Source: Octopus vulgaris (Eukaryota). From it: a stretch of 62,000 nt of DNA. Position numbers and translations under genes: made by a program. Positions 5,123-62,000 of the stretch are shown in pieces. The first letter of the stretch is position 1; each line of letters starts with the position of its first letter. A model generated the notes under the pieces. The model saw only the letters and a program-made list of their open reading frames with translations. It was not told the origin of the DNA and ran no database searches. The stretch lies in contig OX597814.1 in the NCBI GenBank assembly GCA_951406725.2, positions 169,218,001-169,280,000 on the forward strand, read 5' to 3'.

Positions 5123-5158
<36 letters not shown>

Positions 5159-25360: not shown

Positions 25361-26154
25361 TTAGCGGTTCGGCAAAAGAGACTGATAGAATAAGTACTAG
25401 GCTTACAAAAAATAAGTCCTGGGGTCGATTTGCTCAACTAAAGGTGGTGCTCCAGCATGGCCACAGTCACATGACTGAAACAAGTAAAAGAGTATAAGAG
25501 TAAAAGAGGTGTTTTATAATCCATCATTTTAATAAATGGCTGAGTCTGATTTAAGCAGTCTTTGGAATGGTTGAATATTACAGACCACATTAAATGCATA
25601 TGAAACGTAGCGAACATGTTCAAATTATGAGCATATGTCAGTAACAGTTATGGTAATTCTACTTGTAATTGCTAAATGACGGACATTATTTGGTGCTGCT
25701 TCAAAACCCATAAACTTCCTGACTTCAGGAAATATAAACTTTGCAGGATCAAGTGTTATGCAGTGTTTGCTGTTTAGATGAAGCCATTTGGAGACTCAGA
25801 AAATGTATTTTTCTCCAACTTGGTCAATGAATCCACATGAAAACTTCTGTCACACTACACTACAAGGAAACCTCTATAAAATATCTAGGCCTGCTAGGAA
25901 TAGCCCCTGACTCTCTTACAAATTGCACTTTGTTGTCTTAAGAAAAATAAAAGAAAACATTTCTTTAAAAATGTAGTTCAAAGAAAGCATTGAACTACAG
26001 TGTCCTGGATATACAAAAAAGACAGGCTGCTCACAGTTAAGATATCTTTGATCATAGATCTGTTTGACCAAGCTTGATTTAGAATTGAATAACAATTTAG
26101 TCTGTGGAGAATTAAGCAGCATACTGCTTACAAAATAAGAATATGGTTGATTCT

Positions 26155-26984
26155 TTGATTGTAGGTTCATTTGTTTATAGATTAAATTTGTTGATTGGTG
26201 GTTCATTTGTTTATAGATTAAATCTTTTGATTGGTGGTCCATTTGTTTATAGATTAAATTTTTTGATTGGTGGTCCATTTGTTTATAGATTAAATTTTTT
26301 TTTATTGGTGGCCCATTTGTTTATAGATTAAATTTTTTGATTGGTGGTCCATTTGTTTATAGATTAAATTTGTTGATTGGTGGTTCATTTGTTTATAGAT
26401 TAAATTTTTTGATTGGTGGTCCATTTGTTTATAGATTAAATTTTCTGATTGGTGGTCCATTTGTTTATAGATTAAATTTTTTGATTGGTGGTCCATTTGT
26501 TTATAGATTAAATTTGTTGATTGGTGGTTCATTTGTTTATAGATTAAATTTTTTGATTGGTGGCCCATTTGTTTATAGATTAAATTTTTTGATTGGTGGT
26601 CCATTTGTTTATAGATTAAATTTGTTGATTGGTGGTTCATTTGTTTATAGATAAATTTTTTTGGATTGGTGGCCCATTTGTTTATAGATTAAATTTTTTG
26701 ATTGGTGGTCCATTTGTTTATAGATTAAATTTTTTGATTGGTGGTCCATTTGTTTATAGATAAATTTTTTTGGATTGGTGGCCCATTTGTTTATAGATTA
26801 AATTTTCTGATTGGTGGTCCATTTGTTTATAGATTAAATTTGTTGATTGGTGGTCTATTTGTTTATAGATTAAATTTTCTGATTGGTGGTCCATTTGTTT
26901 ATAGATTAAATTTTTTGATTGGTGGTCCATTTGTTTATAGATTAAATTTTTTGATTGGGGGTCCATTTGTTTATAGATTAAATT
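26155..26984. repeat. 36-bp minisatellite, about 23 units
   Basis: Unit TTGATTGGTGGTCCATTTGTTTATAGATTAAATTTT, with minor variants and no spacers. Confidence 0.95.
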
Positions 26985-27370
26985 ATTCACATTCTCATAC
27001 AACATTATATTTCTGGTTAAAGGATAAATGATGCTCAAAAAATCTGACAGTCCACAGTACCCATGTGAGGAATATAGCTGAGGAATACAAAGAGGTTACC
27101 CAACACTTCAACAGTTTCTTCATCTTTGGAAGTGTTTCCAAATTGGTAGGCTAGTGATAGTCTGTAAGGATAGTCACTTGAACTGGAAAATCAATGGTGA
27201 TTTATATAGGATTGAATTGGATTCGAAAGTCAGTTCAAATAATTAAACCAACCTATGATCAAAAGTATTGCAATCATGACCATTGTTTTTTTTGTTCTTT
27301 TTGTTTCTGGAATAGTGTGCTGTGGAGTACATTATTCAGCGCATCCTTTTCTAAGATGATTGGGTGCAGT

Positions 27371-35270: not shown

Positions 35271-35307
<37 letters not shown>

Positions 35308-35342
35308 AAAAAAATTTTTTTCACAATTATAATTTATTAAAT

Positions 35343-35453
35343 TCTCTGAAGAGGCCGTGGGGCATCCTTGTTAATGTCTCATTTATACCTGCCTTATATG
35401 GCTTATAGGTTAAATGAGGCATGATTGCCCTTACTGCCGAAACAGCTGTCAGA
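35343..35453 (+). ncRNA. Type I hammerhead ribozyme motif with extended stem II
   Basis: tct CTGAAGA GGC...GCC GAAAC AGCT GTC aga, with a canonical core and a GUC triplet at 35448-35450. Stem II has nested pairs GGGCA/TGCCC, CTCATTTA/TAAATGAG, ACCT/AGGT and GCC/GGC. AATAAA follows downstream near 35560. Confidence 0.8.
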
Positions 35454-35671
35454 TATGATATAATTACATATTATATTTTATATTTTATATTTCTATTTCC
35501 TTGTCTAATTATATTTACAATATATTTTGTATAATGCCTTTACTGTTATGTAATGGTGTAATAAAGTATTGATTGGGTATCATCTGTTGGTTGATGTTTG
35601 ATTGATTTAAGTATGTTTCTCCATTTTCTAATTTTGTATATATATATATATATATATGTATATGTATATAT

Positions 35672-35990
35672 ATAAATATAAGAGAGTAACCACTATGTGG
35701 TCGACTCTAGCACTAAAAATAGATCCGCTAGGTTTCAGCCACAAAGAATTGTTTCTGATGAAAGTTAGCACGACTACTAGCGCAAACGAACAGGGCAAAT
35801 AAAAATAACAAAAATGCAGAAAACCTAGCGGATCTATTTTTAGTGCTAGAGTTGACCACATAGTGGTTACTCTCTTATATTTATGTATAAAATTTATCGT
35901 AATCCAGGTTTTTATGCACTAAGCCACTTGGTGTTAAATGGATGTACTATTAAATTAGTATCCAATTTTCTCACCCTTATTAGTTTATAT
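35672..35990 (+). mobile_element. Short copy of the 38.8-39.6 kb fold-back family
   Basis: Arms of about 64 bp (35672-35735 / 35821-35884), plus a right-only tail matching 39512-39620. Confidence 0.8.
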
Positions 35991-36639
35991 GTATATATAT
36001 ATAATAATGGCCTTCTTTCAGTTTCCATCTACCAAATCCACTCACAAGGTTTTGGTCAACCTGAGGCTATAATTGAAGACACTTGCTGAAGGTGCCATAC
36101 AGTGGGACTGAACCCAGAACCATGTGTTGGAAACAAGCTTCTTACCACACAACCATGCCTGTGCCTATATTGGTTGTTTTACTTTTGCACTTTTTTCTTT
36201 TAAAATGATAGAAAAGTTGATTTAAAAGAGGGAAAGATGATATGGGGTGGGGTTGGGTGATAATGTGAAACCCACCATATTTGTGTATATAAAATTAATG
36301 TTGTTAGTTAACTTTTGCAATTCATCTCCATGATGATCATTAAGCAAGTACCAATAATATACTGAAGGATAGTTGGCTGTATGCTTCTGTCAAAACCTAT
36401 AGCTTTATGCCTATATTTAAAATCATTATTTTCTTTAGCTCATTTCACTGATGAATTCTAACATTCCTAGGGACAATTTTTAATTGCCATTTGTCTTGGG
36501 TGTTGACAAAATAGGTACCAAGTGAATAAATACTTAGGTCAACTTGACAAATTAAACCTGTCTTTATGAATTTGTATCCCTGAAAGTGCAAGTATGTCTG
36601 AGTAGATGCAGAGTTCCTTCTACAGTTAAGGAGTGACTC

Positions 36640-37040
36640 TTCCTCACACAGCTGTCTTCATTCATACATAACACATGGTTATACCAGTGCAGCCGCTTCT
36701 CTTGCACACCACATTTGATGCTTCTCATGCCCAACTTTTCTCTCAGGGCGCTTACACTCTGTCATGTATGCACACTGACATTACACATCCAGGGGATCAT
36801 ACTAGCTTCATTTCTTTCATTTCTACGCATGTCCTCAGCATTCAAGGCCCATGTTTCAGTGCTGTGTAGCATGGCAGTTTGCACACATGCATCATACAGT
36901 TTACCTTTCACCCTGAGTGAGAAGCCCTTAGTTGCCAGCAGAAGTAGGAGCTCCCTGCACTTTGCCCAAGCTATTCTTACTCTAGTCACTACACTCTCAG
37001 AGCAACTGCCCCTAATACAGACTTGGTTGCCTAGGTAGCA
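36640..37040 (-). mobile_element. RTE LINE RT C-terminal fragment
   Basis: RIAWAKCRELLLLLATKGFSLRVKGKLYDACVQTAMLHSTETW matches the RTE LYGSETW region. Confidence 0.8.
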
Positions 37041-37469
37041 GAAGCTATTAACTGCTTATAGTTTCTCCCCGTGGCATGTAATGGAATCTGTTTTCTATAC
37101 ATCTTCAGTGTTTATTGCCCCAGTGCATCTGCCATACGTAAAAACTATTCACCGTTTTCTATTTGTCTGTCTGTCTCCCTCTTCCACTTTTACTCTCTCT
37201 CATTGCTCACACGTGACCATCGTCCATCTTTCCTTTCCTCATGTGATCATCTTTCTTTTCCTTCAGTCTGTCATACAGACCAGACGCATTCTTATCTGTC
37301 TCCTTTTCTATCTTTTCTCTTGTCAAAGAATATTCCTCCAGTGTTTGTTACCTTACCTCGTCTGGCCCTCCATGTTTGTTTTCATTTGGTTTGTCATATG
37401 TCTCCACTGTCCTGTTTTTGTTACCAACTTTGACCCTCCGCAAATCCCAAATTTTATTTTGCTTTGCGA

Positions 37470-37625
37470 GAGCAACTGTTTTATGAAGCCTCATATTGTC
37501 GTTAATTGCTCGAAATCTTTCTTTATGTTACTTGTTTTGTTTTCCATTTATTTCTCTCATTGTTCTAATTCCCAAGTTTGCCTTCGTATTTCATGTTGTT
37601 TACGTTTTGTGACGTCCTGTATCCA
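37470..37625 (+). repeat. Dispersed repeat also present at 41115-41270
   Basis: About 150 bp near-identical (GAAGCCTCATATT...GTGACGTCCTGTA), each copy ending in (AT)n. Confidence 0.8.
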
Positions 37626-37629
37626 TATA

Positions 37630-37698
<69 letters not shown>

Positions 37699-37769
37699 AA
37701 AAACGGTAAGATAACAAAAGAAAGAAAGAGACCTCAATATTATGTAAATAGAGGAAATTTATCCGTAAA

Positions 37770-37829
37770 ATAACCGAAGAGATGGTATTGTGGATTTCCA
37801 CCTCGGCATCCAAATCTCAGAGTTTTATC
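37770..37829 (+). ncRNA. Degenerate hammerhead-like motif
   Basis: ataa CCGAAGA GATG...CATC C AAAT CTCAGAGT t ttat. Stems I and II pair, but the GAAA is mutated. Confidence 0.4.
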
Positions 37830-38699: not shown

Positions 38700-38815
<116 letters not shown>

Positions 38816-38816
38816 C

Positions 38817-39621
38817 AAGAGAGTGACCATGTGGTCTACTCTAGCACTAAAAATAGATCCGCAAGGTTTCAGCCCCAAAAGAAATTGTTTCCGATGAAAG
38901 TTAGCACTACTACCAGCACAAATAAACAGGGCAAATAAACATAGCAAAATGTAGATTAGTTCGAGACAATTGTTTCACTATTAATAAATTATGTAATTTT
39001 ACTTACATAAATTCATCTGTAGCTCCTCGGTCGAACCCGTCCAGAATACAATTTACCCAATCGCACGCTAGACTTCACCATAACGATAAACGCACGTGCG
39101 GTCGAGTCGATTGTACTCACTGTTATAATTTAAGTGCCCCTGTTAATTTTGGATGTAGTATCTGTTTCCGTGAATTTTGGTGGGCGATACACACTTAAAT
39201 TATAACAGCGAGTACAATCGACTCGACCGCACGTGCGTTTATCGTTATGGTGAAGTCTAGCGTGCGATTGGGTAAATTGTATTCTGGACGGGTTCGACCG
39301 AGGAGCTACAGATGAATTTATGTAAGTAAGATTACATAATTTATTAATAGCGAAACAATTGTCTCGAACTAATCTACATTTTGTTATGTTTATTTGCCCT
39401 GTTCATTTGTGCTGGTAGTAGTGCTAACTTTCATCGGAAACAATTTCTTTTGTGGCTGAAACCTTGCGGATCTATTTTTAGTGCTAGAGTAGACCACATG
39501 GTCACTCTCTTACATTTATGTATAAAATGTATCATAATCCGGGTCTTTTATGCACTAAGCCACTTGGTGGTAAATGGATGTACTATTAAATTAGTATCCA
39601 ATTTTATCACCCTTATCGGTT

Positions 39622-39625
<4 letters not shown>
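38817..39625 (+). mobile_element. Long fold-back element (320-bp arms) with hammerhead motifs and 3' tail; Penelope-like
   Basis: Arms 38817-39136 and 39192-39511 have only a handful of mismatches and a 55-bp spacer. A tail at 39512-39625 is on one side only; both flanks are (AT)n. Confidence 0.85.
39292..39369 (+). ncRNA. Hammerhead ribozyme motif (U4C core variant); mirror copy at 38959-39036(-)
   Basis: gttcga CCGAGGA GCTA...TAGC GAAAC AATT GTC tcgaac. Stem I is 6 bp, stem II closes with G-C, stem III is palindromic and the triplet is GUC. Confidence 0.72.
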
Positions 39626-42259: not shown

Positions 42260-43094
42260 CAGGGAGCAATGGGTAAATTGTTGCCATTATATATTTTTAA
42301 TTTCGAGCATGTGCATTTTTTGTTTTTGATTTTACCGACTACACAGTATAGTAGAAAAACGTAATTCACTCTGCCAGAAATTTGGAAATGACATGCTGTA
42401 CTGCTTCACATTTGTGTCAGAAGCTCAAATTCAAACACTTCAGTATGTTGGGTGTCAATCTGAGTGACCAGAACATGTACTGAGATGGATAAAAATCAAA
42501 CATCCAGCCAACATCATGGTGTTAGGTGTGATCACTAGTGATGGCAACATTATACCTCCATTCATCTTCCCACACAGCCTCAGACCCAATACAGAGGCCT
42601 GCATTAAGTGCCTGGAGGAAGTAGTGCTGCCCTGGGTCAAGAGGGTGGTTGCTAGAAGACCCTATGTCTGGCAACAGGACTCTGCACCATGCCGCACAAG
42701 CTGGAGAACCCATTCATGGATGTCACACTATCTCTGCAACTACATCGCCCTTAACATCTGGCCAGCTAACTACCCAGACTGCTACCTACTTGATTATTAT
42801 GCGTGGGGCACAGTTGAGCAAGAGATCAACAAAACTCTTTATAACACCAAAGTTGAACTGAATGCAAGGATTATGGCAGCATTTACCAACTCAAACGAGG
42901 AAACTGTCCAGAACAGTTGCAGGAGATTCCAAAGTCATCTGGAGGCTATCAATGGCAATTTTATTGACTAAATTTACTCTTTAGTATTTCAAGATATTCT
43001 TATGTAATTTTGGTAAATATATCTGTTAAAATGAGATGTCAGTATTATTTTCATTTTTGCATAATTTAGATGACAATTCATTCACCACACCCAG
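42260..43094 (+). mobile_element. Internally deleted Tc1/mariner element, DD37D (maT) type
   Basis: Degenerate TIRs with TA flanks. ORF 42516-42971 has QQDSAP followed by WPANYPDCYLLD, with 37 residues between the second and third catalytic Asp positions. Confidence 0.85.
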
Positions 43095-44150: not shown

Positions 44151-45469
44151 ATTCAATCTGACACTCGGGTCCAATTAAACAACAGACGAAAAGCATTAAA
44201 ATTTCCCCCTTTCATGTTGCAATGTTTTTTTTTTATTCACATATCAGTTTTTATACCTATGCACATGCTGATCACACACACGCATACGCACACACACACA
44301 CACAAACACACACACACAGCACACACACACATGTATACATGCTCATGCATTCATGCATATATATATATATATATATATAAAACAATCTAAGACTTAGGGA
44401 GATACCTCAGTAAAAGAGAAGAAAATTGATTTTCACAGAGGAGTTTTTCTCACCGAAGCAAGAGTTGTATGTAAAGTGCATATGGTAGTCTGTGTAACGG
44501 AAGCACAATTATCTGTGACTGAAGAGAAAATTATCGTTTTATAAGCCAGACTGACATACAGTAAGGACTAGATGGAATAAGGGTGGGAGTCATTGTTTTA
44601 CTATAGATATTTGTAAGTATAATGGATATTTAAGCTCAACATGTTGAAGAAATTGAGAGAAAGAAGAAGGGGAAATATAGAGGAGGGAGATAGAGATAGA
44701 GATAGAGAGAGAGACAGACAGAGATAGAGGAAAAGGAAAAGGAAAGATCTATGGTTGTTTTGTACAAGAACCATGTCAAAGAGGAAGCGGGAGAGAAGAG
44801 TAAAGTGAGAGCGAGGGAGAGGGAGGAGAGATGGAGAGTCAGACAAAAGGAAGTCAAGATTAAAGCTTTCAGTGTTTTTATTATACTTTGAAAATTTGAT
44901 ATCAGTATTAAGATAAATAAATAATTCCTGTTGAGATTATGGCATCAATGAAGTAAAACTAAATAAAACAAGATTACGAGACATGAAAGAACACACAAAC
45001 ACACACACGTGTGCATGTGCGCACATATGCACAATAATCACACTTAAGTTTAGAAGGTAATTACAGCACATTTCTTGTATATTTTTCTAAAAGTAACAAT
45101 GTTTATTTTCCAGTTGCTTCTTTCAAGTAAACAAATGAGCAGTGGGATAGCTAGACTGTGTGCCTCTCAGAGCAGCACTTGAGTATTTTCCCTACCCACA
45201 ACTGTGCCAATATAGCCTATACAGGCTTAGACAGCAGGCCTAAAAGTATTGCTTGAGGTGAAAGACCTTTGCTCCACAACTATATATAAGCCTTACAGGA
45301 GTGGCTGTGTGGTAAGTAGTTTGCTTACTAACCACATGGTTCTGAGTTCAGTTCCACTGTGTGGCATGGTGGGTAAGTGTCTTCTACTATAGCCTTGGGC
45401 TCTGTGAGTGGATTTGGTATATAGAAACTGAAAGAAGCCCGTAATATATATATATATATACATATATAT

Positions 45470-45650
45470 ATACCAGAGTAAGCACATAAATGCAAAACAA
45501 GGTGGAAAAAATGAAACTGGAATACCAGAGGTAGAGTAATATGCTTTATTGAAAAGCACCAGAAATATTACAAAAACTGTTACTCAGAGTTTCATGTTCC
45601 CGTTCGTCAGACAGTTTATCTCTCTCTCTATCTCTCTCTCTCTCCTCTAC
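45470..45650 (-). mobile_element. Penelope-like pseudo-LTR fragment
   Basis: On the minus strand a hammerhead is followed by AATAAA and an AT-rich tail ending in the (TA)n of a family A SINE head (45296-45445). Confidence 0.65.
45575..45616 (-). ncRNA. Minimal type I hammerhead ribozyme motif
   Basis: aactgt CTGACGA acg ggaa cat GAA ACTC t GAGT A acagtt. Stem I is 6 bp, the core is canonical and the triplet is GUA. Confidence 0.78.
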
Positions 45651-45683: not shown

Positions 45684-45888
45684 ATATTTGGTACTACCTC
45701 CGAGATCTGCACCCGCAGTTGGCTTCACCTGGGCTCGTGCTCGCAGCTTGCATGCACGCCACGGTGCCCTCCTACTTGACCGGGCATCGGAAAGTCGCCT
45801 TGCCAGCGATCGCGCAACCTGTTGCCTGGCCGGTCCGGCATCGGTTGCTCGCTCCAGCGCCATCCACTTTCGTGGCCAGTCGATTCGG
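45684..45888 (-). rRNA. Isolated 28S (LSU) rRNA fragment, about 205 bp (dispersed pseudogene copy)
   Basis: The minus strand has CCGAATCGACTGGCC.CGAAAGTGGATGGCGCTGGAGCG, AGTAGGAGGGC and GGTGCAGATCTCGGAGGTAGTACCAAATAT. These match conserved eukaryotic LSU blocks in order; the segment is a GC/CpG-rich island in AT-rich DNA. Confidence 0.9.
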
Positions 45889-46884
45889 TACACTGCACAT
45901 GTAGTTCAAGAAATAAACTTTAGTGCACATTGTGTCAAATTAAATCTGCTTGAATATCATGAAGGGCTATGTGGTTAAGAAACTTGTGGCTTTGTGGTTA
46001 AGACACCAGTATGGCCACAGTCTAATGACTGAAACAAGTAAAAGATGAAAATAGAAAAATTAAACCGGATACAAGATTCATCATGTGTGTGTGTGGGGGG
46101 GTGTAATTTCAGTCATTTTAATCTTCTTTCATTCTTCTTCTTCTTCTTCTTCTTCTTCTTCTCCTCCTCCTTCTTCTTCTTCTCCTCCTCCTCCTTCCCC
46201 TTCCCCTTTTCTTCTTCTTCTTCTTCTTCTTCTTCTTCTTCTTCCCCTTCCCCCTTTTCTTCTTCTTCTCCCTTTTCTCCCTTTTCTCCTCCTCCTCCTT
46301 CTCCCTTTCTTCTTCTTCTTCTTCTTCTTCTTCTTCTTCTTCTTCTCCTCCGCCTCCTCCTCCTCCTCCTCCTCCTCATTCTTCTTCTTTTTCTTCCTCC
46401 TCCTCCTCCTCCTCTCCCCCTCCCCTCCCTCCCCCTTCCCCTCCCCTCCCCTCCCCCTGCCCCTCCCCCTGCCCCTGCCCCTCCCCCCTTCTTCTTCTTC
46501 TTCTTCTTCTTCTTCTTCTTCTTCTTCTTCTTCTTCCTCCTCCTCTTCCTTTGAATTTGCTGCAGAAAGTTGGTCTATGTTTGTGGTGATGGGGAATGGT
46601 GGTGGTGGTGGTGGTAGGGAGTGCTAGGAGTGCTCAAAGCCATTACCAGCTCTTCATGACTGATGAGGTTCATGCAGGTAATGTTTAACTCGAACATCTA
46701 TAAATTGATGATGCCTGCAGGAAAGAAATATGTGAACGAAGAAAAGGAATCCAGGGGAAAACTCTTTTAGATGTGGGGAGGTCTAAGTGTCAGGAGGATG
46801 TTGTGAGGATGTGACAGGAAGACGAAAGACAGATGGAGCTAGTGGTGCACGACTTTCTACTTCAGGAGAATAGTAAGTTTTATA

Positions 46885-47375: not shown

Positions 47376-49334
47376 AGAATAGTAAGTTTTATAGTAATGG
47401 TAGAAGAGACAAAGGCACGGACCAGTCTGTTGAGGTTGGAGGTTTATGAATCTATGGTCAGTCTTTCCTTTGCCTTGATGTTGTTTATCCCCAGGCCAGC
47501 TCTTATCTAAGGAATTTATTGCCAAAGATGTTCCATCTACGACTATCATATCTTTTATTATAATACACTATATCCAGAGCTACATTACTCATTTGGTCCC
47601 ATTTTTTTGTTTGTTTTTGTAATCTAATAGGGATGATTAAGGTGGTGAGCTGACAGAGTCGTTAGTATACTCTTTACTCTTTTACTCTTTTATTTGTTTC
47701 AGTCATGTGACTGTGGCCATGCTGGAGCACCACCTTTGGTCGAGCAAATTGACCCCAGGACTTATTATTTGTAAACCTAGTACTTATTCTATCGATCTCT
47801 TTTTTGCCAAACTGCTAAGTTACAGGGACATAAACACACCAGCATCGGTTGTCAAGCGATGTTGGGGGGACAAACACAGACCCGGTGCCAGTGACATGTA
47901 AAAAGCACCATCCGAACGTGGCAGATGCCAGCGCCGCCTGACTGGCATCTGTGTCGGTGACATGTAAAAGCACCAACCGATTGTGGCCGTTTGCCAGCTT
48001 CCTCTGGCTCCTGTGCCGGTGGCACGTAAAAATCACCCACTACACTCACAGAGTGGTTGGCATTAGGAAGGGCATCCATCTGTAGAAACACTGGCAGATC
48101 AGACTGGAGCCTGGTGCAGCCTCCTGGCTTCCCAGACCCTGGTCGAACCATCCAACTCATGCTAGCATGGAAAACGGACGTTAAACGATGATGATGATGA
48201 CAATGATGATGATACACATATATATATATACATATATACGATGGGCTTCTTTCAGTTTCCGTTTACCAAATCCACTCACAAGGCTTTGGTCGGTCCAAGG
48301 ATATAGTAGAAAACACTTGCCCAAGGTGCCACGCAGTGGGACCAAACCCGGAACCATGTGGTTCATAAGCAAGCTACTTACCACAAAACCACTCCTACGC
48401 CTGCTTAGCGACATTTCATCTGTCTTCACATTCTGAGTTCAAATTCTGCTGTGGCTGACTTTGCTCTTCATCTTTTGGAGACAATAAAATAAATACCAGC
48501 TGAGCACTGGGGTCAGTTTAAGACTTACCCCTTGCAACTGCTGGCTCTGTACCAACATTTGAAGCCAGTATAATGGGAATGATTTAGAATTGATTGCTAT
48601 TTTTATCAGGATGAATGATCATACAGTTCTTGGCTTGTTTTAGCCTTATATTATGGTGTAGGTGAGTTAATGCAACTTAGAATCTTTGTGACATGAGCAG
48701 CTGTGTTCTGAATAAAATATATGAACTTTTCTTTATCCTATAACAATGATAGCTACTAATTTCTCTGTTAGAAAGGAAATAGCATGTTGATAGCAATAAA
48801 TTGATCCTATCTAGATAGAGAGAATAAATATACAAGCACAAAAATAACAAACAACAAATATTATCATAAAAAAGATAGCATCAGTTTTCTATAAGTAATT
48901 TTTAGAAAGAATTTTGGAATTTATTTCATATATGTTTGTGTGTGTGTGCTTGTGTGCAAGCACAAGCATGGCTTTGTGGTGAGAAGTTTGCTTCCCAACC
49001 ACATGGTTTCAAGTTCATTCCTACTGTGTGGCACCTTGTGCATGGGTCTTCTATTATGTCCTTGAGCTGGCCAAGCCGTGTGAATTTGGTAGATGGAAAC
49101 TGAAAGAAGCTTGTCATGTATATATTTTTATGGTTATATACTGTTAAGAACATAGCATACAGTATAAAGCTTGTCTACCTTCAGAGTTCACACTGTGCTA
49201 TCCGGTAGTAGTATTATATGTACTTCTAGATATGTATTTGGGCTTCTGTCCAACCATACTCCTTCTTGTTGACTCCATCTTATTCAATTATATATATATA
49301 ATATAATATATATAATAATATTATATATATATAA

Positions 49335-50180
49335 TATAATTAGGGCTTAGTAAAATAAATTACTTCGCCACATACTGAACTTAATAGAAATAGCAGCCAA
49401 AAAAATTTTTTTAGCCATTTCTACTACTTAAAGAAAATTTCTCTCAGATAATGTTTACTCAAGATAACTCACGAAGGTATGGAGGTAAATACAGAAAAAT
49501 ATCACAAGTACAAAGATCGTTTGAGAACGTCAACGTTTCTAGATTAGCCAAATAAAATCAGCATTTCTTTCGTCAGCTCAAAATTTCTTAATTTGGATTT
49601 GGAAACACTAAAAAGAAAGAACTTTACCTCTCGGTAATTCATTTCTCTCTGTCATACTGCCTCGGTTCTCGCGGTTAAAATATAATGTTTGCTAGATAGA
49701 CCACGTGGGTGGAAGAGGAGTGCAGGAATTTACGCTTGCGCATTTTGAATTTGTTAGCACTGGCAGTTTGAGCTGGTTCATCTGAGGTGATAAGTTCGCC
49801 GAGAGGTAAAGTTCTTTCTTTTTAGTGTTTCCAAATCCAAATTAAGAAATTTTGAGCTGACGAAAGAAATGCTGATTTTATTTGGCTAATCTAGAAACGT
49901 TGACGTTCTCAAACGATCTTTGTACTTGTGATATTTTTCTGTATTTACCTCCATACCTTCGTGAGTTATCTTGAGTAAACATTATCTGAGAGAAATTTTC
50001 TTTAAGTAGTAGAAATGGCTAAAAAATTTTTTTTGGCTGCTATTTCTATTAAGTTCAGTATGTGGCAAAGTAATTTATTTTACTAAGCCCTAATTATATA
50101 ATGTAATATTTTGAATTCGCCTTAAATGGTCCTTTTACATACTGAACACTTGGTGAAATTGATTAATTAATTTTACCCTC
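49335..50180 (+). mobile_element. Long fold-back element (300-bp arms) with hammerhead motifs and 3' tail; Penelope-like
   Basis: Arms 49335-49634 and 49799-50098, with one mismatch seen and a 164-bp spacer. A right-only tail extends to the (AT)n near 50180. Confidence 0.88.
49851..49913 (+). ncRNA. Hammerhead ribozyme motif; mirror copy at 49520-49582(-)
   Basis: tttgag CTGACGA aAGA...TCTa GAA ACGT tg ACGT T ctcaaa. Stem I is 6 bp, the core is canonical and the triplet is GUU. Confidence 0.75.
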
Positions 50181-50281
50181 AATTGTTGATATATATATAT
50201 ATATATATAGAAATTCGGGGTGAGTACTTGATAATTATAAGCACCTGTGTATACCGTTTGGTGGTGTAGGTGGTGGAGTAA

Positions 50282-50544
50282 ATTGATCAAAATAAAAACA
50301 TGATGCCAAGGATTCAGCGGTACATATGTTTCGGGCCTTTATTAGACAGATTTATAACAATGCATAATGTATGTCTGTGGCCTTCTTCAGCCGCGCACAA
50401 CAGCGTAACACATGTCCTTGTGGAAGCTGTTGTGCGCGGCTGAAGAAGGCCACAGACATACATTATGCATTGTTATAAATCTGTCTAATAAAGGCCCGAA
50501 ACATATGTACCGCTGAATCCTTGGCATCATGTTTTTATTTTGAT

Positions 50545-50548
<4 letters not shown>
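50282..50548. mobile_element. Perfect fold-back (123-bp arms, 21-bp spacer) with hammerhead motifs
   Basis: 50282-50404 is the exact reverse complement of 50426-50548. Confidence 0.9.
50436..50513 (+). ncRNA. Hammerhead ribozyme motif; mirror copy at 50317-50394(-)
   Basis: gcgg CTGAAGA aGGCC...GGCCc GAAAC ATAT GTA ccgc. Stem III is palindromic and the triplet is GUA. Confidence 0.75.
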
Positions 50549-50582
<34 letters not shown>

Positions 50583-50588
50583 TAAAAC

Positions 50589-50901
50589 TTAGGGTATCTA
50601 CAAGACACTGTCATGCTGAAAATAGCAGCCAGGATCTGACTCTAAAATCACATTAAGTGTTCATATAGCACAAAGAGAGAAGACAAAAAGACAAAATAAA
50701 AGTAGTAAAAAATTAATGGATAATTCCAGATCTTGGATTTCTGACTTTGCATTTAGAAATGCTTTTTTTACTAGTAATTTTTTATTAGATTTATTTAGTC
50801 TTTTTGTCTTCTCTCTTTGTACTATATGAACACTTAATGTGGTTTTAGAGTCAGATCCTGACTGCTATTTTCAGCATGGTGGTATCTCGTAGATACCCTA
50901 A
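50589..50901. mobile_element. Imperfect fold-back (about 110-bp arms), no hammerhead core seen
   Basis: TTAGGGTATCTAC...GTAGATACCCTAA. It shares TAGGG termini and the AAATAGCAGCC motif with the 49335 element. Confidence 0.75.
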
Positions 50902-51064
50902 ATTATAATTTTAATAATAATTATTACCTTTGAAGGTTTTTATTTCCATGCTGGCTACTTGATAAGATCATTATTTAACTTAAATTAACGATCTTAGAAA
51001 ATAGGTTTCAAAGAAGAAAGACCACACGTAGTATAAATAGGGGAAAAGTAAAAAGGATGCAAAG

Positions 51065-51392
51065 AAAATGCACATTAGGTACAAAAAAATAAAGGCATTT
51101 TTAAGAAAAGCAAAGATATATGCATACTATTAGATGATTTGAAGTGGAATTTTGAAATATAAAAATCATAATTATGAATCGTTATAAAGATTCAAAGTCA
51201 TATCTGTCATATCTTTCATTTGAAAGTCAGTGATCAGCTCTGACGATACCAAAATGACTTTGAATCTCTATAATGATTCATAATAAGGATTTTTATACTT
51301 CATAATTCCACCTCAAATCATCTAATTGTATGTATATATATCTTTGCTTTTCTTAAAAAAGGCCTTTATTTTTTATATCTAATGTGCATTTT
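51065..51392. mobile_element. Imperfect fold-back (about 138-bp arms) with hammerhead relics in the spacer
   Basis: Arms 51065-51202 / 51254-51392. CTGACGA lies at 51240, and the minus strand has GAAAGATATGACAGA near 51203-51217. Confidence 0.7.
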
Positions 51393-51489
51393 TTGTTTTA
51401 TTTTTATTTTTCCCCTACATATATATAATATAAACCATTGGTCACTCATTGGCTGGACATAAACTTAATTACTTATATATATATATGAT

Positions 51490-51830
51490 CATGGTGATAT
51501 ATATATATATCACTGTGATCACCGTGACCGACCAGGCTATCAGATGTTGCTACACATCGCTGGTCACAATGCGCTTCGCATTGTTTTAGCCTACAAATGA
51601 CGCCACCCTGCTGGCTAAGTGAGAAGGCCAACAGAAGAAAGAGCGAGGGAAAGTTGCGGCGAAAGAGTACAGCAGGGATTGCCACCCCACCCCCTGCCGG
51701 AGCCTCGTGGATCTTTAGGTGTTTTCGCTCAATAAACACTCACACTGCCTGGTCTGGGAATCGAAACCGCGAGTCCGCTGCCCTAATTGCTGGGCCATTG
51801 CACTTCCACAAGCAGTAAAGGGTACAAGAA
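51490..51830 (-). mobile_element. SINE with family D head and RTE-derived tail
   Basis: The head matches 23863/31691 (GAGCGAAA.CACCTAA..TCCACG). The tail GAAGCGCATTGTGACCAGC matches 176-194. Confidence 0.8.
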
Positions 51831-54418: not shown

Positions 54419-54755
54419 TCATGCGTGTGTGTATGTGCGTTCATGTGTGTGTGTGTATGTAAATACACACACACGTACAGACAGACAGATACACACACAC
54501 TGATATATATATATATATATATATATGTAATCTTTTATCACAGCATATTCCATAATGGATTCACAGCATCATGCATAATGAACAGCATAATTAATCACCA
54601 CTGCTGCTGTTCTTGCTTATGTTCAATATATTGATCTTCCCTAGTGGTTTGCTATTATTCCTGGTGAACAAACTTACGAACTATCTATCTACCTTGTGTG
54701 CATGTCTCTCTGTTTGTTGGTTTACCTGCCTCTCTGTATGTCTGTCCATTCATCC

Positions 54756-54845
<90 letters not shown>

Positions 54846-54857
54846 TTATCTATCTAC

Positions 54858-54914
<57 letters not shown>

Positions 54915-54916
54915 CA

Positions 54917-54947
<31 letters not shown>

Positions 54948-55098
54948 CTGGACAGACAGACGCAAGTCAAATGGGCTCCAAGTAAGTTGGTCATTTTGTA
55001 CGTTCAAAAGTGTTTATTGTTAAATATTTTGTGTTTAAAAGTTGTGCAACAACATCCACTGCAAACCTTGACTAATATCTACACAAAATTTCGCAAAA

Positions 55099-57126
55099 AT
55101 GGCTACTGGTCACCACGAGGCTGAGGCGCAACTGAAGCGTGACGCCAAAACAAAAAAGCAAGATTTCCTGTCACCATGCGCTGAACTTGACTGTGTAAAC
55201 ACTACTTACTCCAACACCACCACCATCAGCATCGACAACAGCAACAAATACAAAACAAAGGTCGTAAGACCAAGCACCGTCACCGCCACCAGTGATTCCA
55301 CCATCAACACCAACACCACCACCATGGCAGCATCTGCTACTACAACTGCTATCTCTGCTAACGACACCACTACCAGCAACAATAACAATACCAACATCAC
55401 CATCACCGCCACCAAAGACCGTGCCGTCAATGCCTCCCTTGCTACTAATACCTATTTCTTTATTACCCACAAGGGGCTAAACATAGAGGGGACAAGCAAG
55501 GACAGGCATAGGTATTAAGTCGATTACATCGACCCCAGTGCATAACTGGTACTTAATTTATCGACCCCGAAAGGATGAAAGGCAAAGTCAACCTCGGCGG
55601 AATTTGAACTCACAACGTAACGACAGACCTAATACCACCGCCGTCACCAAGAACGACAATAACAACAACAACAATTCCCTTCAGCCACTGTTCACTCCAT
55701 CACCAACAAGTGAAGGTGAGAAAAAAATAACAGCGACAATCAAACGAGGTGCCGAAATTTGCGCTAATGCAGGACCAAATTACGCAGACAATTTTCCACC
55801 CCTTGCCAGTTGCATAATCAGCAACCACAAACCTAATATACCCACAACCCACACCCCTGCCACCAACACCAACACCACCGGCAGTAACAACAATAACAAA
55901 ACAACAACAAACTTCGCCGAGGCGATAAAAGAAAAAATAACAAGAGTACCGTTTACTGCACAGCAAATAAAAGACTGCAGAGCCCTAATCACCAAAGAAA
56001 ACGGCAAAATACAATTACACATACCACAACACATACTGAATGAGGAAAAAAAGAGAACAATTGTATATAAAATAACAAACAACACAACTAAAAGTCCAGA
56101 AAAAGCAAGCACGGACAAAATAGAAAAGTGCCTACGCCCCATCTGGGGACACAAGGAGTATGTGACTTGGTCGAACAAGTTCGCCCACGTACAGGTGGTT
56201 TTTTCAGAATGAAGAGTTGGCAAAGCAATTCCCAACGCTAACTCTTCATTCAGATGAGCTAACAATGACACCCAGTTACCTTGGCCAGAAGGTGACAAAG
56301 GTCATTATCAATAATGTCCCGCAAATAACAACCACACTATGGATAACATCCGCCATAACATCCGAAATGGAGGACATTAACATCCTGGATATCACTGTTT
56401 CGAAACACAAGGACTGGGTGGGAAAGAGAATGGAGATTCTCTTCCACATAAGCCAAGACGACATTAACAAAATTCCCACCCACGTACATCTTGCGAATGA
56501 CCGCAAGTTGTATGTAGTAGTCGAGGGCAGAAGGCCACGCTGCTATACATGTGGCAGTGAGGCACACCTCAAAAAGGAGTGCAAATCTGCCGCGAAACAA
56601 CAACAACAACAGCCACAGGAAAAACCACAAAAGCCAGCATTATTGTCCACACCACAATATGGACGGCTAATCAAGAAGCTGTATGCAGAAATGCATGAAA
56701 AACAACAAAGAACGGACCAACCCAACCAAACAACACCACCACCTGCGCCAAGAACAGAATCATCACCACTAACAACAACTAAACCAATTCCAACACCGAG
56801 AACAACAACGAAGAAGACAAGCACCAAGGATGTAGGAGAGAAATCACCACACCAAACCCCCCAGCAACACACCCCACACCACAACAATATCTACAACCGC
56901 ACAAACAGACCCAGATGCTTTACCCTTACCCCCGGCTAATTCGTCAGGCTTTTCATCTAACGATGAAAGTTCGACAGAATGGCAAATAGCCACCGGGGGT
57001 AAAAGAAAAGATTAAAAAAAAAACAAACAAGAAAACGCAACCAAAGCAGGGAGATACCTGAACCCTGAAAGCTCCATACACAACCAAACAGGAACGAGGA
57101 AGCCAAAACTTTCGACACAAGTAAGT
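55099..57126 (+). pseudogene. Disrupted gag-like ORF1 of LINE copy 1
   Basis: ORFs 55099, 55538 and 56217 join up once the SINE and frameshifts are removed. It carries the zinc knuckle CYTCGSEAHLKKEC (C-X2-C-X4-H-X4-C). Confidence 0.8.
55453..55628 (-). mobile_element. 5'-truncated SINE family B inside ORF1
   Basis: 8-bp TSD CTAATACC at 55445 and 55629. Confidence 0.85.
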
Positions 57127-57173
57127 AACTCTCTGTACTTTCCTTTCTGTGTTTTAAAGCACACAATAGAATC

Positions 57174-58089
57174 ATGGTCAAGATTGGTTGTGTGAATGCG
57201 CGTGGCTTGGGGTCTCCTTGGAAACAAGGATACCTCCTAAATGACATGAAGTCACACGATTTGGGAATCAGCCATAAGTGAGACCAGACTCCACGAGCCA
57301 CGGGCCCTAAAGTCCATGTTTGGCGGACAGTTTAACATTTATTTTGCTCCCTGTCTGCCGAGGATGGGCGGTAGTGGCACCGCGGTACTTTTTCACTAGA
57401 GCCTGGATCTCGAAGTCAAGAAGATATTCGTAGACCCGGAGGGTAGACTGGTCGTTCTGGATGTCAACGGTAGCAGTGGGTGTGCTTTTCGACTCGTATC
57501 AGTCTACGCACCGCCTTTAACAGGTCGGCCGGATTTCTTTCAACGTCTAGAAGTATTCCTGGGAACGTCTCGTCCTTTACTTTTAGTGGGGGATTGGAAT
57601 GCTACCTTGGACACGCATCTAGACTATGTGGTGAGAGACAAAAACAGAAGGGGATGCAAATGCTTCAGAGACCTGCTCAGACAATTCCAACTGTCTGACA
57701 GGTACCGACTCGACCACCCAAATGCACCAACGTGGACATGGAGTAACCGCAGTGGGTCGTCGAGATCGTATCTAGATAGGATACTGTGTAGGACAGTAGA
57801 CAAGGATAACTTAGGATGTCCACAATTCCACACAGTCAGCTACACAGATCACAAATTCGTGACATGTACGCTAGACTTAGATAAGGCACATAGACAGGGT
57901 CCTGGTTACTGGAAACTGAACGTATCATTCCCGTCCAGACAAGATTTCAGAGACAGAATCAACACGTTTGTAAAAAGGGCTTTAACGGGAGCCATTGTCA
58001 ACAACAAATGGTGGTTCGCCCTCAAGAGAGCAGTAAAAGCGGAAGCAATTAGATATAGCAAGGCGCTAGCCGTAGATAGAAATAGAGTA
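57174..58089 (+). pseudogene. Frameshifted ORF2 apurinic endonuclease domain, copy 1
   Basis: MVKIGCVNARGL, SETR, LVSVYAP, VGDWNATLD, WTW...SYLDRIL, DHK and GPGYWKLN are L1/Tx1 APE motifs. Confidence 0.88.
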
Positions 58090-58614
58090 TCACTTGAAGA
58101 GGAAAGTGAGAGTAGAGAGGTAAGTTTTGTCTAGTGAATGTTTTAAAAAAAGATGGGTGAATGTAGCAAGGATGGCGCGTATGAATGACGAAGCCACCTT
58201 GACTATGATTCTATGAACCGTAAAAATTAATACAGAGAGTTGCTTATTTGCAAAAAAAAAAATAAAAGAAAGTAATATAACATGTGACTTCATTGACCGA
58301 GGTTACCGTGGTCTTTTCCGTAGGCTTTTCTTTCCACGGGTAAACCTCACCTGTCCTCCCCTTTGCACTTCATATTGACATTTCTGTGATAACGATCCCT
58401 ATTGATCAATTCCCCCCCTTTTTTTTTAAATTTTATTTTATCTCCCCCTTTTTTTGTCCTCTTTCTTTCCATTTACGATCTCTTTTGATCGAAAATCAAA
58501 CCCCCTTCTTTTACTCCCAAAAGAAAAGCTCTACCTTGTAATTTTGTTCTGTCTGTGTGCAGCCCTGTGTGGCTAATAAAGAAACATATCTATCTATCTA
58601 CATATGTATGTATG

Positions 58615-58665
<51 letters not shown>

Positions 58666-58677
58666 ATCTACCTATCT

Positions 58678-61600
58678 CGACATGGACGGACGCTAGTAAA
58701 ATCGGCTCCACGTAAGTTGGCCACTTTTACATGTTTAAAACTCCTTGTTGTCAAATATTTTGTTTTAATCGTTGTGCAAGTTAATTCACTAAAAAAACTG
58801 AGAATTATTCACGTAGAATTCCGCCCCTGTATGGGCGAAATTACCAAAAACTTTCAAAACTTTCGTGGGTTCCTTTTAGCCATTTTTCATTTTGAAAATG
58901 GCAACTAGAAACCACGTGGCTAGCCCGCCAGCCATGCGGAACGGTAGCGAAACACTATTGCTACCACTAGCTGCTAAACCTCGCAGCTTGAACACCGCTG
59001 TCACCACCACCAACCAACAACAACAACAAAACTAACGTCGCAAGACCATTCACCATCGCCGCGACCAAAGACATTAACTTAGATTTCCCCCCACTCCCTA
59101 CACTACTTGTCGATGATAAAAGGATGGAGAAAGGGATTTCAAAGACGAATACAGACGAAAACATGAATGCCAGCACCACCACCACACCACCAACAACAAC
59201 AACAACGAAATCAACACAAAGCCGCCTACCAAAGACAACACCGCCAACACCAACACCACTACCATGACTTCAACTGCTACAACTAACCCTTCTGCTGCTA
59301 ACACCGCTAAAATTAAAACGAATTTCGCGGATGCGACAAAATAAAAACGAACAATCGTAAAATTCACCACACAGGAAATAAACCTCACAAAAGCACTCTT
59401 CACCAAAGAAGGAGATAAATTGCATCTTCACATTCCACAGCACATCGTGGAAAACACACAAAAAATACAATAATCTACAAAGTAATAAACAAGAAAACAA
59501 GACGACCAGAAAATGCACCGCAGGAAAAAATTGAAAAATGCCTTCGTCCTGCATGGGACTCCAAGGAGTATATCAGTTGGGGAAATAAATTTGGTACAGT
59601 CCAAGTACGTTTCCTCAACGAAAATTTAGCAAAACGATTTTCCACATTGGAGCTGCATTCAGACGACTTGGTAATGATACCAATCTATTTAAACCAGAGA
59701 GTGACGAAAGTCCAAATAAAAAATGTACCCCCTGAAGTCGAAACACAATGGTTAGTCTCTGCCATCTGCTTTGAAATGGCAGAGACAAACATCCTTGAAA
59801 TCGCTGTTCTAGGACAGAAAGACTATGTGGGAAAATCAATCCAATTCCTTCTTCAATTGGATGAAACAGCAAGAGAAAAAATACCCACACTATAGAACTG
59901 CCAGGAGGCTACAAACTTTATGTAGTGGTAGAGGGCAGGCGACCACGTTGCTATTTGTGTGGAAGCGAAACACACTTGAAAAAGACGTGCCCAACCACTG
60001 CACACCAAGAGCAACAACAACAACCACTACCACAACCAAAACACTCCGGAAAAAAGCTCTACTACCCACACCACCATCAACACAGAAGACGACAAGAGAA
60101 GCACACCAAGCTAATCCGTCAACAACCAAAAATTACTCAACACCTGAGAAAATACCAACACCACCAACAACAGCAAGAACCAAAGGAACAGAAAAACAAA
60201 GAAAATACACAAAAACTGATTCCCCATCCCTTATACCGCACTCACCACACACAAACACTCAACAAACAACAGCACAACCACTTACACAGACATACATAGA
60301 AGCCTACAACATACCCCTACCCACTACTGATTCCTCAGAAAATTCGTCGGAAGACGAAACCAGTGAGGAATGGCAAATAGCTAGAAAAAGAAGGAAAATA
60401 AAGATCAGAAACACAACCAAACCAAATGCAAACACTAACAAAGCAGGGGGAAATACATCTCCCGAAGACATTTCAAAACCCAACACAAACAACAGCCACA
60501 CCAACACCACAAAAATATATACAGCAAACATGCTCACAGCTATAGACACCAAAAACACAAATTTGATGGAATACATCCAAAAAAAACAAACATAACAGAA
60601 GATGACATAAAAGCAAACAATCACCCATACACAACACCACCAGACCACATCAAAATATTACACATCTCCAAAAGTCTGCACCACACACTCAAAGGCATTT
60701 TCCCCAGTGCGGTTGGTAAATGCCAAAAATATCTCACAAAGAAACTGTACTGGGATCTCCTCGAGGACAAACCAAAGGAGGAGAAAGCAAAACCTTTCGA
60801 GCAGTAAGTAACCCTCTGTTCCTTTCACTTGTATTCTAATTCATTAGGATTATGATCAAGATTGGTTGTGTAAATGCGCGTGGCTTGGGGTCCCCTTGGA
60901 AACAAGGGTACCTCTTAAATGACATAAAGTCACATAAGTTAGAAATCATAGCCATAAGTGAGACCAGACTCCACAATCCACGGGCCCTAAAGACCATGTT
61001 TGGCGGACAGTTCAACATTTATTTTCCCCCTGTCTGCCGAGAATGGGCGGTAGTGGCACCGCGGTACTTTTTCGCAAGAGTCTGGATCTCAAAGTAAAGA
61101 CAATATTCATAGACAATATCCAGGACGACCAGTCTACCCTCCGGAGGGTAGACTGGATGTCGACAGCAGCAATGGGTGCATTTTCGACTCGTATCAGTCT
61201 ATGCACCGCCCTTAACAGGTCAGGCAGATTTCTTTCAACGTCTAGAAATATTCTTGGGAACATCTCGTCCTTTACTCTTAGTGGGGGATTGGAATGCTAC
61301 CTTGGACACGCATGTAGACTACGTGGGTAGAGATAGGAATAGACGGGGATGCAAATGCCTCAGAGACCTGCTCAGACGCTTTCAACTGTCTGACAGGTTC
61401 CGACTAGACCACCTGAATGCGCCAACGTGGACATGGAGCAACCGCATTGGGTCGTCGAGATTGTATCTAGATAGGATACTGTGTAGGACAGTAGATAGAG
61501 ATAGCATAGGATGTCCACAATTCCACATAGTCAGCTGCACGGATCACAAACTTGTGACATGTACGCTAGACTTAGATAAGACACTTAGGCAGGGTTCCGG

Positions 61601-62000
61601 ATACTGGAAACTAAACGCGTCTTTCCCATCGAGACAGGTTTTCAGAGACCGGATTAGCACACTAATAAAGAGGGCTTTGAGGGGAGCCATTGTCAACAAC
61701 AAATGGTGGTTTGCCCTCAAGAGAGCAGTAAACGCAGAAGCAATTAGGTACAGCAAAGCACTAGCCATAGATAGAAATAGAGTAGAGGGTGAGCTAGTTA
61801 AGAAGCTAGAAGAGGCAATTAGAAGCGGCATCACATTCGACGTTTTGGTGGCGAGGTTTGCCCTCGACCAACACTTCAACGCCAAACACGAAGGGTGTGC
61901 TGTCAGGGCTAGGATGCGTGCTCTAAGGAACGAAGGTGTTGGAGCCGCGAGAGAGGCCCGGGTGGCAGAGGCGCAACAGGGCAACAAAGCCACCATTCGG
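58678..62000 (+). mobile_element. Tx1/L1-clade LINE copy 2 (runs off the window end)
   Basis: The 5' UTR is homologous to copy 1. ORF1 starts at 58898 (MATRNH) and has CYLCGSETHLKKTC. ORF2 starts at 60852 (MIKIGCVNARGL) with APE motifs and frameshifts, and continues past the copy 1 deletion point. Confidence 0.9.

Follow-up and report, generated by a model that had tools for sequence, protein, structure and literature searches.

A stretch of 62,000 nucleotides of the Octopus vulgaris genome (assembly GCA_951406725.2, contig OX597814.1, positions 169,218,001 to 169,280,000 of the forward strand; hereafter the window) contains an almost perfect fold-back, designated FB1, at positions 49334 to 50189, with a hammerhead-like motif in each of its arms. 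Judged by its anatomy and its motif against published descriptions, FB1 is probably the product of one insertion into a TA microsatellite. The inserted element would be short, non-coding and of the Penelope-like element (PLE) kind, being a non-autonomous derivative or else a copy with heavy 5' truncation. It is best assigned to an element type already known, and not to a new one. An original prediction, made from the letters of the sequence, had pointed to a retroelement of the reverse transcriptase (RT) and GIY-YIG kind; the anatomy bore this out in its outward sense motifs, one-sided tail, TA flanks and head-to-head copies, whereas an open reading frame (ORF) of that type was not found in the window.

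Structure and age of FB1

A repeat search identified an inverted repeat of 307 nt that included a TA-rich edge (49328-49634 and 49799-50105, 99% complementary), and base-by-base comparison of the arms over this length gave four mismatches. Two of these (49330 and 49333) lie in the TA-rich edge, within which the match between the arms is probably fortuitous. The real arms, 49334-49634 and 49799-50099, contain two mismatches in 301 nt (49366, C/T; 49406, T/A), that is 0.7%, and not the single mismatch in 300 bp initially counted. The predicted fold-back with arms of about 300 bp and a 164-bp spacer was otherwise recovered, as was the tail on one side, which is closer to 90 than to 85 nt. The parts of FB1 and its flanks are as follows:

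49286-49333, no strand: TA-rich microsatellite remnant on the left flank, the presumed target (from the sequence; period-2 array at 49289-49338 by Tandem Repeats Finder, TRF)
49334-49634, minus strand: left arm, an inverted tail-less copy with its sense 5' end at the centre and its 3' end at the TA tract
49520-49582, minus strand: hammerhead-like motif of the left arm (descriptor scans; core box TCGTCAG at 49570-49576)
49635-49798, no strand: spacer of 164 nt, GC 43% against 31% in the arms, unique in the window
49799-50099, plus strand: right arm, a direct copy that runs on into the tail (inverted repeat)
49851-49913, plus strand: hammerhead-like motif of the right arm (descriptor scans, folding; no Rfam match)
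50100-50189, plus strand: one-sided 3' tail of about 90 nt, homologous to the tails at 39517-39624 and 35884-35988
50190-50213, no strand: perfect TA repeat of about 10-12 units, the 3' flank common to FB1 and the adjoining fold-back FB2 (TRF 50189-50209)

On the left, a TA-rich tract (49286-49342) adjoins the arm directly with no gap. The 3' ends of both copies point outward, towards the TA tracts, and the tail is present at one side only. The whole unit has a length of about 560 nt, compared with about 210 nt in FB2. The spacer is interpreted as additional 5' sequence of the longer copy, whichever of the two that is. No other near-identical copy of the arm, spacer or tail was found within the window. 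Separately, 49690-49709 in the spacer and 39482-39502 in the 3' part of an arm of another fold-back, FB0, match at 19 of 20 nt in the same orientation (TGCTAGA(G)TAGACCAC(A/G)TGG), with a score of 28 against a shuffle maximum of 34, which is not significant alone; if real, this match would make the plus strand the sense strand of the spacer.

The very recent insertion that had been predicted agrees with the arm divergence: FB1 appears to be young because its arms, identical at birth on the PLE reading, differ at 0.7%. On the octopus calibration implied in PMC13282606, in which Jukes-Cantor distances of 0.065 and 0.2 correspond to 18 and 56 million years, two differences in 301 sites would give an age of the order of 1 million years, a rough figure that assumes no gene conversion between the arms. 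With the same roughness and the same assumption, FB2 (0/123) would be as young as FB1 or younger, FB0 (3%) a few million years old and the further fold-back FB3 (11%) older still.

A hammerhead-like motif in each arm

As predicted, CUGACGA boxes are present on both strands, at 49857-49863 on the plus strand and mirrored at 49570-49576 on the minus strand (there TCGTCAG on the plus strand). The plus-strand motif reads UUUGAG-CUGACGA-(30 nt)-GAAAC-G-UUGA-CGU-U/CUCAAA, with the predicted cut at the slash. Helix I pairs 49851-49856 with 49908-49913 (UUUGAG/CUCAAA, 6 bp) and is flush with the core; the helix II region spans 49864-49893 and is followed by the GAAA box at 49894-49897; helix III pairs 49897-49899 with 49904-49906 (ACG/CGU, 3 bp), with a UUGA loop, and is closed by A15.1-U16.1. 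The cleavage triplet is GUU at 49905-49907, as had been noted, and the cut is predicted between 49907 and 49908. The CUGAnGA...GAAA core, an NUH triplet and helices I and III in register are therefore all present, and the predicted topology fits a type I hammerhead.

The description of the motif as a canonical hammerhead held for the core boxes and for helices I and III only. Helix II is an irregular 30-nt stem of 3 bp and 5 bp around a 3x3 internal loop, and the hammerhead fold, at -7.3 kcal/mol, lies 2.4 kcal/mol above the minimum free energy (MFE). Given the irregular helix II, an A·A at 10.1/11.1, a fold above the MFE and the lack of an Rfam match, the motif is not canonical. Thermodynamic z-scores of the motifs were no different from those of shuffles. 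As a monomer the motif is probably weak or inactive. Since the two motifs lie on opposite strands, a single fold-back transcript could not form a dimeric ribozyme from them; it would instead fold into a 300-bp hairpin. We infer that the hammerhead-type motif in the sense strand of each arm is the processing motif of the family itself.

Enrichment of the motif in the window

The window was scanned with a descriptor requiring CUGANGA, 4-60 nt, GAAA, a minimum of 2 bp in helix III with closure by A-U, a position H17 other than G, and a helix I that is flush with the core and has a minimum of 4 bp. This identified five loci, three of them independent: FB1 on both strands, FB2 on both strands and a solitary motif, U3 (45574-45617, minus strand). 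Dinucleotide shuffles gave 0.28 loci per window, or 0.05 if helix I was required to be at least 6 bp. In a decoy control, both core boxes were replaced by all 720 permutations of their letters and scanned on the real sequence; the true core gave five loci against a mean of 0.17 over the 720, and the runner-up gave two. A second descriptor, which also demanded a helix II of at least 3 bp and allowed a long helix II, lost U3 and gained U4 (35343-35453, plus strand). The true core again gave five loci, the mean over the 720 was 0.115 and no other core reached five.

The window thus holds four independent motif units (FB1, FB2, U3 and U4). Because the true core alone among the 720 permutations reaches five loci, the motif is not attributable to chance, and the hammerhead architecture is a real, recurrent and non-random feature of this genome stretch despite having no Rfam match. 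In both motif-bearing fold-backs, FB1 and FB2, the sense motif runs from the centre outward, towards the tail. A (TA) tract of at least five units lies 100-290 nt downstream on the sense strand in all four motif-bearing units; the background chance of such a tract within 300 nt downstream of a random position and strand is 0.118. Some 70 kb of fetched loci, when scanned with the descriptor, yielded no hammerhead-like motif; a 20.5-kb O. bimaculoides stretch was the only one of them close to the window.

Neighbouring elements of similar anatomy

The anatomy of FB1 recurs in other fold-backs of the window, which also contains two solitary units:

50214-50551, minus strand: FB2, with the same anatomy as FB1 and adjoining it on the other strand (repeats, descriptors, fold)
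38812-39624, plus strand: FB0, consisting of (TA)n, inverted arm 38812-39136, 55-nt loop, arm 39192-39516, tail 39517-39624 and (TA)n
35675-35988, plus strand: FB0b, another FB0-family copy (88-90% identity), with outer ends and tail as in FB0 and TA tracts on both sides
35305-35636, plus strand: U4, a solitary hammerhead unit between two TA tracts (CUGAAGA, G10.1-C11.1, long helix II, GAAAC-AGCU-GUC)
45574-45617, minus strand: U3, a solitary hammerhead-like motif with a 7-bp helix I, a weak helix II and a TA tract about 100 nt downstream on the sense strand

FB2 comprises a tail (50214-50281, about 65 nt), an arm (50282-50404), a loop of 21 nt (50405-50425) and a tail-less arm (50426-50548), followed by (TA)14. 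Its arms are identical at 123 of 123 positions. The sense motif, 50394 to 50317, lies inside the arm 50282-50404, and its MFE fold is the three-way hammerhead junction, in which helix III (ACAUAUGU) is palindromic. U4 is the most canonical hammerhead of the window, with G10.1-C11.1, a GUC triplet and a helix III that is palindromic (ACAGCUGU); its helix II forms a very stable hairpin of unusual length (about 85 nt). Arm identity falls from 100% in FB2 and about 99% in FB1 to about 98% in FB0b (by eye), 97% in FB0 and 89% in FB3. FB0b combines a tail-less copy of about 150 nt with a tailed copy of about 57 nt plus the tail, and shares its outer ends with FB0 while the inner break points differ.

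FB3 (50590-50900) is a third fold-back, located after the next TA repeat, with 142-nt arms of 89% identity and with neither tail nor hammerhead. Its outer ends both read GAUACCCUAA(A/G)UU and resemble the internal tail-less end of FB1 (AGCCCUAAUU). A smaller fold-back at 51116-51339 (86-nt arms, 90% identical) has a CUGACGA in its loop (51240) with no GAAA box or helices and is not a hammerhead. Upstream of U3, on the minus strand, 45690-45900 forms a GC-rich island of about 200 nt in the 37% GC window, between (CA)n/(GA)n and U3; several frames are open on each of its strands, and it had no Pfam match and no Rfam match at gathering score.

Tails and TA tracts

Local alignment of the FB1 and FB0 tails gave a score of 20, compared with 10 +/- 2 for both shuffles and real AT-rich window segments (p<=0.002). 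An nhmmer profile built from these two tails matched the window at just three places (39499-39625, 35865-35984 and 50081-50186), each ending at a TA tract. Having homologues in FB0 and FB0b, the FB1 tail belongs to the element and not to the flank. Whole-unit alignments among FB0, FB1, FB2 and U3 showed nothing significant outside the tails. The last 20-25 nt before the TA repeat hold a common motif of the form ...UUUUA(U)CACCCU..., 8-12 nt ahead of the repeat, which reads AUUUUAUCACCCUUAUCGGUUGUU in FB0, AUUUUCUCACCCUUAUUAGUUUA in FB0b, AAUUUUACCCUCAAUUGUUGA in FB1 and CUCACCCCGAAUUUC in FB2. Differing non-coding bodies with a common 3' module are the pattern that would be expected of several non-autonomous elements using one enzyme.

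The FB1 tail ends in ...ACCCUCAAUUGUUGA and the internal-site end in ...AGCCCUAAUU. The internal start site (AGCCCUAAUUAUAU) resembles the terminal one (UACCCUCAAUUGUUGAUAUAU), a likeness noted by inspection, which would fit two start sites that are recognised alike. TA tracts lie on both sides of FB1, FB2, FB0, FB0b and U4.

Genomic context

The window has a GC content of 37.6%, a CpG observed/expected ratio of 0.45 and 5% microsatellites. An abundant SINE-like family (short interspersed nuclear element; 45296-45472, 35986-36161, 5126-5302, 48212-48396 and many others) shows 75-90% identity among its copies, always with (TA)n at the same end; tRNA-like A and B boxes were seen by eye at the other end, and no tRNA was returned by ARAGORN or Rfam. 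A 20-kb O. bimaculoides locus has the SINE-like repeats of the window at 85-90% identity. Degenerate copies of a long interspersed nuclear element (LINE) at 54600-62000 and 37039-37770 encode a zinc-knuckle ORF1 and an AP-endonuclease domain and are 81-84% identical to each other; their nearest database relative is 64% identical and continues into RVT_1 and zf-RVT domains. A 167-aa open fragment at 42468-42968 resembles the C-terminal half of a Tc1/mariner-type transposase and is 59% identical to an uncharacterised O. bimaculoides protein, with no Pfam match. A plant source, suggested by the zf-RVT domain of the nearest LINE relative, was rejected on the strength of this protein match and of the SINE-like repeats held in common with O. 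bimaculoides, which mark the window as octopus-like. Shifted self-matches revealed a tandem array at 26150-26987 (period about 72 nt, about 93% identity between units).

Coding content and weight of the evidence

A number of observations count against assigning FB1 to the PLEs. Among the 148 longest stop-to-stop ORFs of the window (at least 81 aa), Pfam searches identified neither RVT_1 nor GIY-YIG, and the spacer, arms and tail of FB1 contain no open frame or coding trace, all six frames of 49335-50190 being full of stops. With no RT/GIY-YIG ORF, FB1 is at most a non-autonomous or truncated derivative. The suggestion that the spacer would lead to the RT/GIY-YIG sequence of a partner was not borne out, as it has no open frame and no match in the window or in protein collections. 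No second copy of an FB1 arm or spacer was present in the window, in protein collections (searched with peptides) or in viral or prokaryote genome contigs, so that the pattern of constant 3' ends with variable 5' ends is seen here in FB0 and FB0b and not in the FB1 family itself.

The motif and the neighbouring elements raise further points of this kind. Where a G10.1-C11.1 pair is expected, FB1 has A·A and FB2 has A·C, and only U4 has G-C; this pair has been called highly conserved (PMC4209133). Rfam returned no hammerhead (RF00163 and related) at gathering score in the whole window, and none at E<=10 in searches of 2.2-kb, 141-nt, 121-nt and 111-nt segments, none of the motifs being matched. 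FB0, though its tail is homologous to that of FB1, has merely a degenerate core (CAGAUGA...CGAAAC-AAUU-GUC), the same in both arms, and the difference between FB0 and FB0b could equally be put down to a deletion inside a DNA element. The TA tracts around the fold-backs may in part be 3' tails of the SINE-like family and not free microsatellites. Finally, the tails of FB1, FB2 and FB0 measure 65-108 nt (about 90 in FB1), compared with 30-40 bp in published PLEs.

The Rfam searches returned only spurious miRNA and snoRNA matches, caused by hairpins. The longest arm-ORF peptides of FB1 and FB2 had no match in protein collections, and a 20-mer of the tail and a 24-mer of the motif had none in viral and prokaryote genomes. 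A metagenome match to a 21-mer of the motif was rejected as a chance 22-mer in a GC-rich bacterial contig.

Alternative explanations

A fold-back or miniature inverted-repeat transposable element (MITE), that is, a DNA transposon with very long terminal inverted repeats (TIRs) moved by a TA-targeting transposase, with incidental hammerhead boxes, is an unlikely explanation, although the strongest of those set against a PLE. It would account for the long, almost perfect inverted repeat, but the conserved tail outside that repeat, on one side and in three elements, makes the mobile unit asymmetric. The ends of FB1 (TA/GGGC...GCCC/TA) are compatible with a TA duplication, which is here indistinguishable from the TA-rich context, whereas FB2 lacks TA/.../TA termini and no 8-bp (hAT) or 3-bp TWA (PIF) direct duplication is present, the flanks being different. 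TIR and Tc1/mariner elements are common in octopus (PMC13282606), the window has the transposase-like fragment at 42468-42968, and FB0b could derive from FB0 by internal deletion; against this, no transposase match to the arms or spacer was obtained, and the hammerhead architecture is specifically enriched and oriented to the tail. A match of spacer and arms to a DNA transposon with a transposase and a fixed target-site duplication, which the original prediction had named as the observation that would speak against it, was not among the results.

Particular DNA transposon groups were also considered. A hAT element (TAGGG ends, 8-bp duplication) was rejected on the differing flanks AATATAAT and ATTATATA, and PIF/Harbinger on a left TTA and a right TAA with no direct duplication. 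A Helitron on the minus strand (A/TC...CTAA/T) fitted FB1 loosely and neither FB2 nor FB0, and was likewise rejected.

Slightly less probable again is a non-autonomous element moved by a microsatellite-targeting non-LTR (long terminal repeat) element, for example a Dong-R4 LINE, with an inverted half produced through twin priming or through template switching, and with TA repeats that are its own 3' tails. The TA repeats do lie at the outward 3' ends, and the abundant SINE-like family of the window also ends in (TA)n, but the 3' ends of the fold-backs are unlike the 3' end of that SINE. Nor is twin priming on a single RNA known to duplicate 300 nt. Among the LINE subdivisions of O. vulgaris, Dong-R4 has the largest number of recently active insertions (PMC13282606), and LINE remnants occur in the window. 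Hammerheads, however, are tied to PLEs, Terminons and retrozymes, while R2- and RTE-type LINEs have hepatitis delta virus (HDV)-like ribozymes (PMC4209133). A one-sided tail with two start sites has been called a peculiarity of PLEs (PMC11167929).

It is very improbable that FB1 is a palindromic chimera created in assembly or amplification, or a local inverted duplication that arose spontaneously, with a motif due to chance: the arms are nearly perfect and PLE-type structures are known to trouble assemblies (PMC8557442), but FB1 has two genuine mismatches and its 164-nt spacer is unique, five elements that differ in age display this anatomy, and the decoy controls exclude a chance motif.

Proposed mechanism and significance

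On the preferred assignment of FB1 to the PLEs, a PLE RT/GIY-YIG enzyme supplied in trans would cut both strands of the TA repeat, and the 3' end of each cut strand would prime cDNA synthesis on the element RNA. One cDNA would begin at the RNA 3' end and give the tailed copy (49799-50189), possibly reaching into the spacer; the other would begin at an internal site about 90 nt upstream and give the tail-less copy (49634-49334). Both would run towards the RNA 5' end and halt at different points, the 164-nt spacer representing the surplus of the longer, and the two cDNAs would then be joined head to head. A hammerhead in a unit-length or tandem transcript would cut upstream RNA off the template. 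By analogy with studied PLEs we infer the two-sided priming, the partner enzyme and the ribozyme activity.

An active autonomous partner, as originally proposed, is plausible because recently active PLE families have been reported in O. vulgaris (PMC13282606), namely 31 PLE families with 336 insertions classed as recently active. That the spacer holds sequence of this partner is conjecture. As a broader and tentative possibility, octopus genomes may harbour currently active families of PLE parasites that are non-coding, very short (about 200-560 nt) and equipped with a common 3' tail module, and that insert in TA repeats as solitary head-to-head pairs. Each insertion would then record two-strand, two-start-site reverse transcription and leave a perfect hairpin of 120-330 bp, which on transcription could supply small-RNA silencing of the family.

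PLE integration is still poorly understood, and the two-strand, two-start-site model rests on a single in vitro study (PMC11167929). Young, near-perfect insertions such as FB1 show the product that this model predicts, a tailed and a tail-less copy placed head to head in a TA repeat. The same product is seen here for elements with no coding capacity, which would imply mobilisation in trans via the common 3' tail module. The hammerhead-type sequences concerned are invisible to Rfam, so that ribozyme censuses in cephalopod genomes of this kind are likely to undercount.

Comparison with known systems

Plant LTR retrozymes, with direct LTRs, type III hammerheads, a primer binding site (PBS) and a polypurine tract (PPT), are unlike FB1, which has inverted repeats, type I motifs and an animal host. 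Fold-back and MITE DNA transposons, which include the microsatellite-targeting Micron of rice, are like FB1 in their long inverted arms, lack of coding capacity and TA or (TA)n flanks; FB1 differs from them in its conserved one-sided tail outside the repeat, its hammerhead motifs and the lack of a demonstrable target-site duplication.

Metazoan non-LTR retrozymes, known in mussel (Cervera and de la Pena, 2020; PMC7229834), have been proposed to be PLE derivatives (bioRxiv 10.64898/2026.07.22.740005). Like FB1, they are short (170-400 nt), AT-rich, non-coding and non-autonomous, carry a type I hammerhead and are likely PLE-dependent. Retrozymes, however, are head-to-tail tandem arrays that yield circular RNAs, whereas FB1 is a solitary head-to-head pair with its motifs on opposite strands, so that one transcript cannot release a unit. 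No head-to-tail tandem of the FB1 unit was found: TRF identified only microsatellites in 48800-51600, and there is no direct repeat of the unit.

The minimal hammerheads of PLEs have been described as type I motifs of an atypical sort, in which helix II is large, helix I short and helix III palindromic, and in which position 9 is followed by an extra nucleotide; they have low activity, probably act as dimers, and some escaped the descriptor used by the authors themselves (Cervera and de la Pena, 2014; PMC4209133). The motifs of the window share with them the type I topology, the large helix II and short helix I (3-7 bp), and the fact of being missed by standard models. An extra or unpaired A directly after CUGAnGA is likewise present in FB1, FB2 and U3, and a short palindromic helix III in FB2 and U4. 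FB1 itself departs from the PLE pattern in a loop 3 that is not palindromic and in its GUU, not GUC, triplet.

PLEs occur in cephalopods (PMC8967140). Their insertions are highly 5'-truncated and often accompanied by an adjacent inverted 5'-truncated copy, giving inverted repeats, with a 30-40-bp tail at one end only and (TA)n as the preferred target; their hammerhead motifs sit in the terminal repeats, close to the 3' end (Craig et al., 2021; PMC8557442). FB1 resembles insertions of the Penelope/Poseidon, Neptune and Hydra clades (Evgen'ev and Arkhipova, 2005; PMC8557442; PMC11167929) in its inverted 5'-truncated copy, one-sided tail and TA/AT-rich target, and in a sense hammerhead-type motif upstream of the 3' junction. 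Target-site duplications of the PLE type are unclear, and none is clear at the TA flanks of FB1 either. Unlike an autonomous PLE, FB1 has no RT/GIY-YIG ORF, and no partial tandem (pseudo-LTR) was seen.

A further parallel is the protein of the anole PLE PAc, which in vitro cuts and extends both DNA strands and begins reverse transcription at two internal RNA sites, the interval between them being the tail; the hammerhead cut site of PAc lies about 90 nt upstream of the start sites (PMC11167929). In FB2 and U3 about 105 nt separate the predicted cut from the 3' junction, near this value. Current views of PLEs are not overturned by FB1, which offers a clear natural case from a lineage whose PLEs have been reported as active but not dissected.

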